A stretch of DNA of 55,509 nt, from contig NC_068984.1 in the NCBI RefSeq assembly GCF_001194135.2, positions 138,653,487 to 138,708,995 of the forward strand. Reading direction: 5' to 3'. The stretch's first letter is position 1. The number at the start of each line of letters is the position of its first letter. This stretch comes from Octopus bimaculoides. Lineage: Eukaryota. This document shows, piece after piece, positions 13,799 through 13,948 of the stretch. The position numbers and the translations under genes were made by a program. Under the pieces are notes generated by a model. It was not told the DNA's origin. It searched no databases and was given only the letters and a program-made list of their open reading frames with translations.

Positions 13799-13948
13799 AT
13801 GATGGTGAACCATAACACTCATGACTATGGTTACAACTACTACTATAACCAACAAGGCTGCCACCACAACTGGCCTTACTCATGTGATTCTAACCAATAT
13901 GCCTGTTATCCCAGTTGCCAATATGCAACCTGGACAACTGAGCCCTTC
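13799..13948 (+). CDS. MITF: Candidate alternative first coding exon 1b of MITF (MMVNHNTHDYGYNYYYNQQGCHHNWPYSCDSNQYACYPSCQYATWTTEPF)
   Basis: 50 open codons from ATG; phase-0 donor TTC|GTAGGT followed by T-rich intron-like sequence; joins in frame to the exon at 27872. No Leu/Ile/Lys/Arg, unlike the random AT-rich ORFs here. Confidence 0.6.

Follow-up and report, generated by a model that had tools for sequence, protein, structure and literature searches.

A conserved candidate alternative 5' coding exon of MITF in Octopus bimaculoides and its comparison with vertebrate exon 1M

The MITF/TFE factors are kept cytoplasmic by Rag- and mTORC1-dependent phosphorylation, and the vertebrate melanocyte isoform of MITF escapes this control via exon 1M. 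Do cephalopods, with their own pigmented cells, carry anything comparable in their MITF gene? The question is raised by a stretch of 55,509 nucleotides (nt) from Octopus bimaculoides (contig NC_068984.1, positions 138,653,487 to 138,708,995 of assembly GCF_001194135.2), hereafter the window, in which an open reading frame (ORF) on the + strand, beginning with ATG and ending at a potential splice donor, lies upstream of the annotated exon 2 of MITF. The original prediction had read this ORF as an alternative first exon and a possible analogue of the exon that defines the vertebrate isoform MITF-M. Our analysis makes it probable that it is an unannotated, conserved, alternative 5' coding exon of O. 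bimaculoides MITF, with an ATG-ATG start and joined to exon 2.

The candidate exon and its conservation

The candidate exon (13799..13948, + strand) is translated as MMVNHNTHDYGYNYYYNQQGCHHNWPYSCDSNQYACYPSCQYATWTTEPF, 50 codons with an ATG-ATG start and a composition rich in Tyr, Asn, His, Gln, Cys and Trp (9 Tyr, 6 Asn, 4 His, 4 Cys, 4 Gln and 2 Trp) from which Leu, Ile, Lys and Arg are wholly absent; on translation, every count and coordinate of the original prediction proved right. The nearest upstream in-frame stop lies 31 codons before the ATG, and a GTAGGT donor stands directly 3' of codon 50. The prediction had further claimed that this phase-0 donor joins at VKTQLEHP, and this is confirmed from the donor at 13949 and exon 2 from 27872: the join 13948^27872 is in frame, exon 2 being phase 0 at both ends. 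The proposed splice partner, MITF exon 2 (27872..28132, + strand; VKTQLEHPTKYHIQQ...APTD; 261 nt), is an exact match to the annotated isoform X1 (XP_052823482.1) and is bounded by the acceptor ttttccAG and the donor GTGAGT. Such ORF-plus-donor syntax is by itself no more than chance, as other ATG ORFs of 40-64 codons ending at a phase-0 GTRNG occur in the 27.8 kb upstream of exon 2, with donors at 4179, 4933, 8169, 8223 and 18471. It is conservation that sets the candidate apart.

An exhaustive HMMER search with the 50-residue peptide against 1.84 billion representative proteins recovered a single true relative, P0002 (E = 7.8e-20; 78% identity over residues 1-50), encoded by an ORF of an 89-kb contig in an ENA assembly; in the 20-kb stretch of it that was fetched (L002) the exon occupies 10202-10351. 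The weak matches P0003-P0005 in the same search were dismissed as unrelated repeat proteins. When the window was compared with these 20 kb, the sole non-microsatellite alignment was 13795-13961, that is, the exon with 4 nt on its 5' side and 13 nt on its 3' side. The 36 nucleotide differences between the two exons fall 7/2/27 at codon positions 1/2/3, and 25.0 of the 25.5 synonymous sites differ versus 11 of the 124.5 non-synonymous ones (proportions of differing sites, pS 0.98 and pN 0.088); none of 20000 random placements of 36 changes kept the protein as well.

A third copy is found in Argonauta hians (L009 70937-71092), where it is intact and extends to 52 codons (156 nt) with two single-codon (3-nt) insertions; it retains the ATGATGGT start, the GTAGGT donor and, before the ATG, an AG followed by TGGT. 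The unique collinear conserved blocks shared by the window and this locus are the seven annotated coding exons and the candidate only, the remaining matches being dispersed repeats, and none of the other ORF-plus-donor candidates in the 27.8 kb is conserved. The flanking intron does not align across species: conservation starts at 13787-13795, 4-12 nt before the ATG, and on the other side runs through the donor and a conserved intron start (13949..13961, + strand), which reads GTAGGTTTTT in Octopus and Argonauta and GTACGTTTGT in L002, and past which the reading frames of the compared species diverge. A six-frame check found one frame only to be open in all species. Given its conservation in two other cephalopod genomes with a coding-type pattern of substitution, the exon stands above chance, and the segment 13799-13948 is almost certainly a real coding exon under purifying selection. 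A frameshift or loss of the ORF in close relatives had been named as one outcome that would speak against the prediction; both other genomes instead carry it intact, with low pN, and the two indels are in frame.

The constraint is not uniform in strength. Between Octopus and Argonauta the candidate exon shows pN 0.197 and pS 0.73, versus pN 0.040 and pS 0.61 in exon 2 of the same pair, and it is thus constrained, but less tightly than the protein core. The Argonauta exon is 66% identical to the Octopus copy versus 93-94% for the rest of the protein, and the L002 copy, probably the more distant one, is 78% identical, which suggests that, among argonauts, the constraint acting on the exon has relaxed or shifted.

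Position in the locus and age of the exon

That the window is the O. bimaculoides MITF locus is plain from several lines of evidence. The peptides of its seven annotated exons (exons 2-8) are identical to isoform X1, and it sits within the O. bimaculoides locus L011 (CM046604.1), from L011 position 39955. The joined bHLH-ZIP region matches the PDB structures of MITF (4ati, E = 1.5e-38) and TFEB (7ux2, E = 7.6e-37) as well as the Pfam HLH family (E = 3.6e-15), and exon 2 matches PF15951, the MITF/TFEB N-terminal domain, above the curated cut-off (E = 4.8e-10, profile positions 61-134). To our knowledge, MITF is the single MiT/TFE gene of invertebrates.

All annotated or transcript-derived cephalopod MITF proteins that we retrieved (O. 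bimaculoides X1 and X2, O. sinensis, O. vulgaris, Argonauta and four Logan transcript ORFs) share a canonical start, MDTF...FYELKSK...NRTNLKQQLMKQQVAEQERKE...PPQVLQ, which runs into VKTQ of exon 2. This N-terminus includes a Rag-binding-like segment, NRTNLKQQLMKQQ, the counterpart of the vertebrate RAG-binding helix SRILLRQQLMREQ. A search of the window for the exon with this motif by regular expression, tblastn and a small hidden Markov model found none, because the exon lies 6.6 kb upstream of the window start; indeed, none of the 107 canonical N-terminal residues is encoded in the window, all of them lying upstream, so that the candidate is an alternative start and not the sole one. Hence, of the claim of an alternative first exon, the alternative part stands, the canonical Rag-motif N-terminus being present in every annotated octopus isoform; how far the exon is also a first one turns on the upstream signals considered below. 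In L011 the order is exon 1 (1001-1117), the second, 1B-like exon (33180-33386), the candidate (53753) and exon 2 (67826), and in Argonauta the 1B-like exon ends at L009 53954 (...PPQVLQ, then GTAAGG), followed by the candidate and by exon 2 from 77627. The candidate is thus placed inside a 34-kb intron between the Rag-binding-like exon and exon 2, and this placement, matching that of vertebrate exon 1M, is borne out in both O. bimaculoides and A. hians.

Immediately upstream of the ATG there is an AG dinucleotide (13793..13794, + strand; 4 nt before the ATG), a putative 3' splice acceptor if a non-coding leader exon precedes the candidate. With a slash after this AG, the sequence reads caAG/TGGTATG in the window, ctAG/TGGTATG in Argonauta and atAG/ATGTTATG in L002, the AG being common to all three species at 4-5 nt upstream. 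Because of this shared AG, and because upstream conservation stops there, a non-coding leader exon appears as likely as a promoter of the exon's own. Two non-coding blocks on the + strand further upstream may be a promoter, an enhancer or part of a leader exon. One (13234..13316), about 0.5 kb upstream of the candidate and with a TTCC...GGAA palindrome-like stretch, has a single-copy collinear match in Argonauta (L009 68634-68718; 74%, E = 6e-8) and was not found in L002; the other (12482..12539), about 1.3 kb upstream, contains CAATTG and TAATTA and is likewise matched once and collinearly (L009 64426-64483; 81%, E = 5e-9).

How old is the exon? Two segments of L002 match the MITF locus of the cuttlefish Acanthosepion pharaonis (L010): 16210-16590 to L010 4212-4603 (E = 1e-34) and 17747-18295 to L010 7042-7573 (E = 1e-67). 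These blocks are of about 70% identity, single-copy, collinear and intronic, and lie just upstream of cuttlefish exon 2; if they are not old repeats, they are intronic elements conserved in decapodiform MITF. As they are shared with cuttlefish MITF and not with the octopods, L002 probably comes from a decapodiform. Exon 2 itself was not found in the fetched stretch of L002; by collinearity, if the source is a decapodiform, it would fall about 150 nt past the end of that stretch. The 78% identity of the exon between Octopus and L002 is close to that between Octopus and the cuttlefish-type sequence in the canonical N-terminus (79%) and in the rest of the protein (76%). If L002 is decapodiform, the exon would be older than the split of the two coleoid superorders, the octopods and the decapodiforms. 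The MMVNH exon was not found in the cuttlefish locus, which covers 9.9 kb upstream of exon 2, an uninformative result, as by collinearity with L002 the exon would be expected about 1.8 kb past the point where that locus ends. Scans of JGI metagenome contigs with a protein pattern and a degenerate DNA pattern also gave no copies of the exon.

In the course of these comparisons we observed that the deposited cuttlefish MITF models P0014 and P0134 begin within exon 2 (MPNMVAVQ), finish with a tail of low complexity (FFFFFFLPFLSLSLSL...) and look like truncated, misjoined annotations. The full decapodiform MITF protein is given by the Logan transcripts P0012 and P0133.

The predicted isoform and its rival explanations

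Were the exon transcribed and spliced to exon 2, translation would start at the conserved ATG-ATG and splicing from the conserved GTA(G/C)GT donor would lead in phase 0 into VKTQLEHP of exon 2, giving a product of 392 or 426 residues in which a 50-residue aromatic polar head, probably disordered, replaces the canonical 107-residue N-terminus. PF15951 matches the joined peptide at residues 51-125 only, leaving profile positions 1-60 unmatched, and the candidate peptide is devoid of the L[KR]xQLM[KR]xQ motif; a protein starting at 13799 would hence be without the Rag-binding-like helix. The predicted product would keep a 14-3-3-site-like serine (SITSVP, 50715-50732), encoded by the downstream exon 50661..50835 (+ strand; an exact match to X1 with similarity to human MITF), which also begins the basic region. 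We align SITSVP with ISNSCP of MITF and SSSCP of TFEB, which we take to be the 14-3-3 and mTORC1 serine. On the model of MITF-M and of TFEB truncated at the N-terminus, a product that does not dock on the lysosomal Rag GTPases might escape mTORC1 phosphorylation and 14-3-3 retention, and might thus be constitutively nuclear. The larger proposal, that coleoids evolved their own M-like MITF isoform before the octopod/decapodiform split and independently of vertebrates, uncoupled it from lysosomal mTORC1, and used it in specialised cells such as melanocyte-like cells of the ink gland, chromatophores or retinal pigment cells, is one that we consider doubtful as a whole, and any specificity of the exon for pigment cells or another tissue is pure conjecture.

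What might the new head do? Invariant in the three species are MMVNH; G11-Y12; Y14-Y15-Y16-N17; G20-C21; W25-P26-Y27; D30; Q33-Y34; C36-Y-P-S-C-Q-Y-A43; W45; and F50. The overall composition is likewise kept in all three, with 8-9 Tyr, 2 Trp, 3-4 Cys, no Leu or Ile, and at most one Lys or Arg. AlphaFold2, run on the peptide with a shallow two-sequence alignment, gave no confident fold (predicted local distance difference test score 45.9), and Pfam holds no family for the 50-residue peptide. The simplest reading is an aromatic-rich disordered head, the Tyr and Trp residues of which may serve as an activation or self-association module; since the Cys and Trp positions are fixed, it could equally be a small specific binding or metal-binding motif. 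A reflectin-like composition was also considered and dropped, there being no M-D repeats and no HMMER link, and Cys being present.

Several observations weigh against the exon being used as an alternative start of MITF. The MMVNH start is found in none of the retrieved annotated or transcript-derived cephalopod MITF proteins, all of which begin canonically, and the predicted 392- and 426-residue MMVNH isoforms are absent from a collection of 15 billion proteins. The candidate donor, TTC/GTAGGT, is weaker than the donors of the annotated exons, mostly GTAAGT or GTGAGT; neither a core-promoter motif nor conservation was found immediately upstream of the ATG; non-synonymous change in Argonauta is about five times faster in the candidate exon than in exon 2 (pN 0.197 vs 0.040); and the linkage of L002 to MITF rests solely on the two collinear intronic blocks shared with the cuttlefish locus. 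The absences from models and from the collection are mild evidence against broad, high expression, and this evidence is weak given gaps in the index: the word-indexed protein search is incomplete, having missed octopus proteins with an 87-residue exact match and P0002 when queried with its own sequence, so that its negatives carry little weight. With this limit, a search with the joined peptide of exon 1 and exon 2 returned cuttlefish genomic ORFs only and missed the annotated octopus proteins, a search with a two-species peptide alignment gave no candidates and missed P0002 itself, and exact look-ups of the window ORFs had no matches. Among the papers searched, none dealt with cephalopod MITF isoforms.

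The same data bear on what else the segment could be. A chance ORF followed by a chance GT in a long AT-rich intron, with no function, might be suspected from the 4-5 further ORF-plus-donor cases of similar size in the same 27.8 kb and from the absence of the exon from current protein models. Against it, the candidate is conserved in two other genomes amid unalignable flanking introns, with third-position changes, in-frame indels and the start and donor kept, and the other syntactic candidates are not; contamination of L002 or L009 by octopus DNA is implausible at 24-34% nucleotide divergence. Chance is thereby refuted in practice and extremely improbable. So, for all practical purposes, is a conserved non-coding element, be it enhancer or structured RNA, with one frame open by accident. 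The setting would suit such an element, the intron being large and regulatory, in a developmental gene, and other short conserved non-coding blocks lying nearby, but the three-base periodicity of 7/2/27, the difference of 25 out of 25.5 synonymous sites, the two indels in multiples of three and the single frame of six that is open in all species again amount to a refutation, and we grant it next to no probability.

If the segment is coding, it could still belong elsewhere or act otherwise. It might be the first coding exon of a separate nested small gene or micropeptide transcript, spliced elsewhere than to MITF exon 2 or ending in the intron, and it is true that no transcript connects it to exon 2 among the protein models and transcript-derived proteins retrieved, that its peptide is without a known domain and that annotators left it off MITF. 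However, the coding constraint ends exactly at a conserved GT, which implies that the exon is spliced onward; no other conserved block separates it from exon 2, whether in the comparison of Octopus with Argonauta or in tblastx of the window against L002; going downstream on that strand, the first conserved exon to follow is MITF exon 2, in phase; and the intron position is kept in two octopods and probably a decapodiform. We therefore regard a separate gene as unlikely. The AG shared by all three species 4-5 nt upstream of the ATG opens a further route, namely inclusion of the segment after the 1B-like exon and ahead of exon 2 as a cassette or 'poison' exon that would truncate or destabilise the canonical mRNA: splicing at this AG adds 154 nt and, read in the canonical frame, meets a stop after six codons (TGG TAT GAT GGT GAA CCA TAA). 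Yet selection at the amino-acid level in the ATG frame, with saturated synonymous sites, would be unexpected if the delivery of a stop were its only role, and we hold that explanation to be quite unlikely. The poison use and the use as an alternative start are not mutually exclusive, and the former is a possible second use of the exon. The reading that we prefer is hence still that of an alternative 5' coding exon of MITF, spliced to exon 2.

The other coding exons of the window, all on the + strand, follow the expected course of MITF. Exon 3 (35029..35133; MDNIFPEGISLES...), activation-domain-like, matches XP_052823482.1 exactly and is a conserved block versus Argonauta. A cassette exon of 34 codons (41175..41276; GHSHVINNWENMD...YNK), included in isoform X1 but not in X2, is conserved versus Argonauta, and a diverged version of it also occurs in cuttlefish-type transcripts. 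The basic region and helix 1 are encoded at 52453..52528, as the bHLH-ZIP structure matches indicate, helix 2 and the leucine zipper at 52819..52966, and the last coding exon, with the stop codon, lies at 53397..53660; all three match X1 exactly. Rfam and tRNA scans of the window gave no matches. Dispersed repeats resembling short interspersed nuclear elements (8894-8993, 21941-22046, 23649-23933, 31517-31711 and others) match many sites of the Argonauta locus at 72-93%; (TG)n, (TA)n and trinucleotide microsatellites are abundant, and runs of N mark assembly gaps at 21329-21892 and 42160-42557.

Significance and comparison with known systems

If expressed, the exon would be an independently evolved, non-homologous cephalopod exon doing the same thing as 1M at the same junction, and, if this is true, we would be looking at convergent evolution of one regulatory trick at one exon junction in two phyla. 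It would also offer a natural experiment on the bypass of nutrient control of a master regulator of lysosomes and pigment. At a more immediate level, the current gene models of O. bimaculoides, O. sinensis, O. vulgaris and Argonauta all miss the exon, and its recovery illustrates that comparison of cephalopod genomes can retrieve short alternative coding exons missed by RNA-guided annotation.

The closest parallel is vertebrate exon 1M. In vertebrate MITF no upstream exon but 1M is spliced directly to exon 2A, and MITF-M is without the RAG-interaction residues, which exon 1B1b carries, and is predominantly nuclear (PMC6672050); the statement in the original prediction that MITF-M is without the Rag-binding segment and largely nuclear agrees with this. 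The vertebrate junction that it had cited is likewise in agreement both with that study and with amphibian M-type proteins, which read MLEMLDYNHYQ followed by VQTHLENPTKYHIQ. Like 1M, the octopus exon supplies an ATG of its own and is an alternative 5' coding exon placed between the RAG-binding exon (1B1b in vertebrates) and exon 2; it has the same phase-0 junction, into VQTHLENPTKYH in vertebrates and VKTQLEHPTKYH in octopus; and its predicted product is without the RAG-binding segment. Unlike 1M, with its 11 codons, it is 50 codons long and so far seen in cephalopods only, and whereas 1M is known to have a promoter of its own, to be spliced directly to exon 2, and to give a nuclear product expressed in pigment cells, the octopus exon is known from sequence alone. 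No sequence similarity was found between it and 1M (MLEMLEYNHYQ), and the HMMER search against 1.84 billion proteins yielded a cephalopod relative only. The vertebrate peptide MLEMLDYNHYQ (P0108, P0109 and P0127) does end in a Y/N/H/Q-rich stretch that echoes YNYYYNQQ of the octopus, most likely a coincidence given how short it is. The octopus exon therefore appears to be at most an analogue of 1M and not a homologue, with the analogy holding for gene structure. In this form the predicted likeness to MITF-M survives for gene structure, position and junction, and falls away for sequence homology, as the word analogue had itself allowed.

The other 5' exons of the MiT/TFE genes (MITF 1A, 1C, 1H and 1B, and those of TFEB and TFE3) provide the more general precedent of a single locus in which several 5' exons give rise to N-terminal variants, and the canonical first exon of the octopus (MQDSGIDD...FYELKSK) resembles vertebrate exon 1A. 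The octopus candidate would differ from these in bypassing the 1B1b-like exon, since the vertebrate MITF 5' exons other than 1M all feed through 1B1b and keep RAG binding (PMC6672050).

Engineered forms of TFEB furnish a further parallel, as TFEB lacking its first 30 residues is no longer recruited to the lysosome. Lysosomal recruitment is abolished in TFEB without the docking helix (PMC6672050, PMC9363479). The predicted octopus product would resemble such N-terminally truncated TFEB and RAG-binding mutants in keeping the SITSVP serine and the bHLH-ZIP without the docking helix; it would differ in that its loss would be a natural one, via exon choice, and accompanied by a new 50-residue head. 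In composition only, this head is akin to the Tyr-rich prion-like regions of the FUS/EWS/TAF15 type, being 24% aromatic, rich in N, Q, S, T and H, and almost devoid of aliphatic or basic residues. Its three Cys and two Trp that are invariant and fixed in position set it apart from those regions and speak more for a specific binding or metal-binding motif than for generic low complexity; it is also much shorter and has no [G/S]Y[G/S] repeats.
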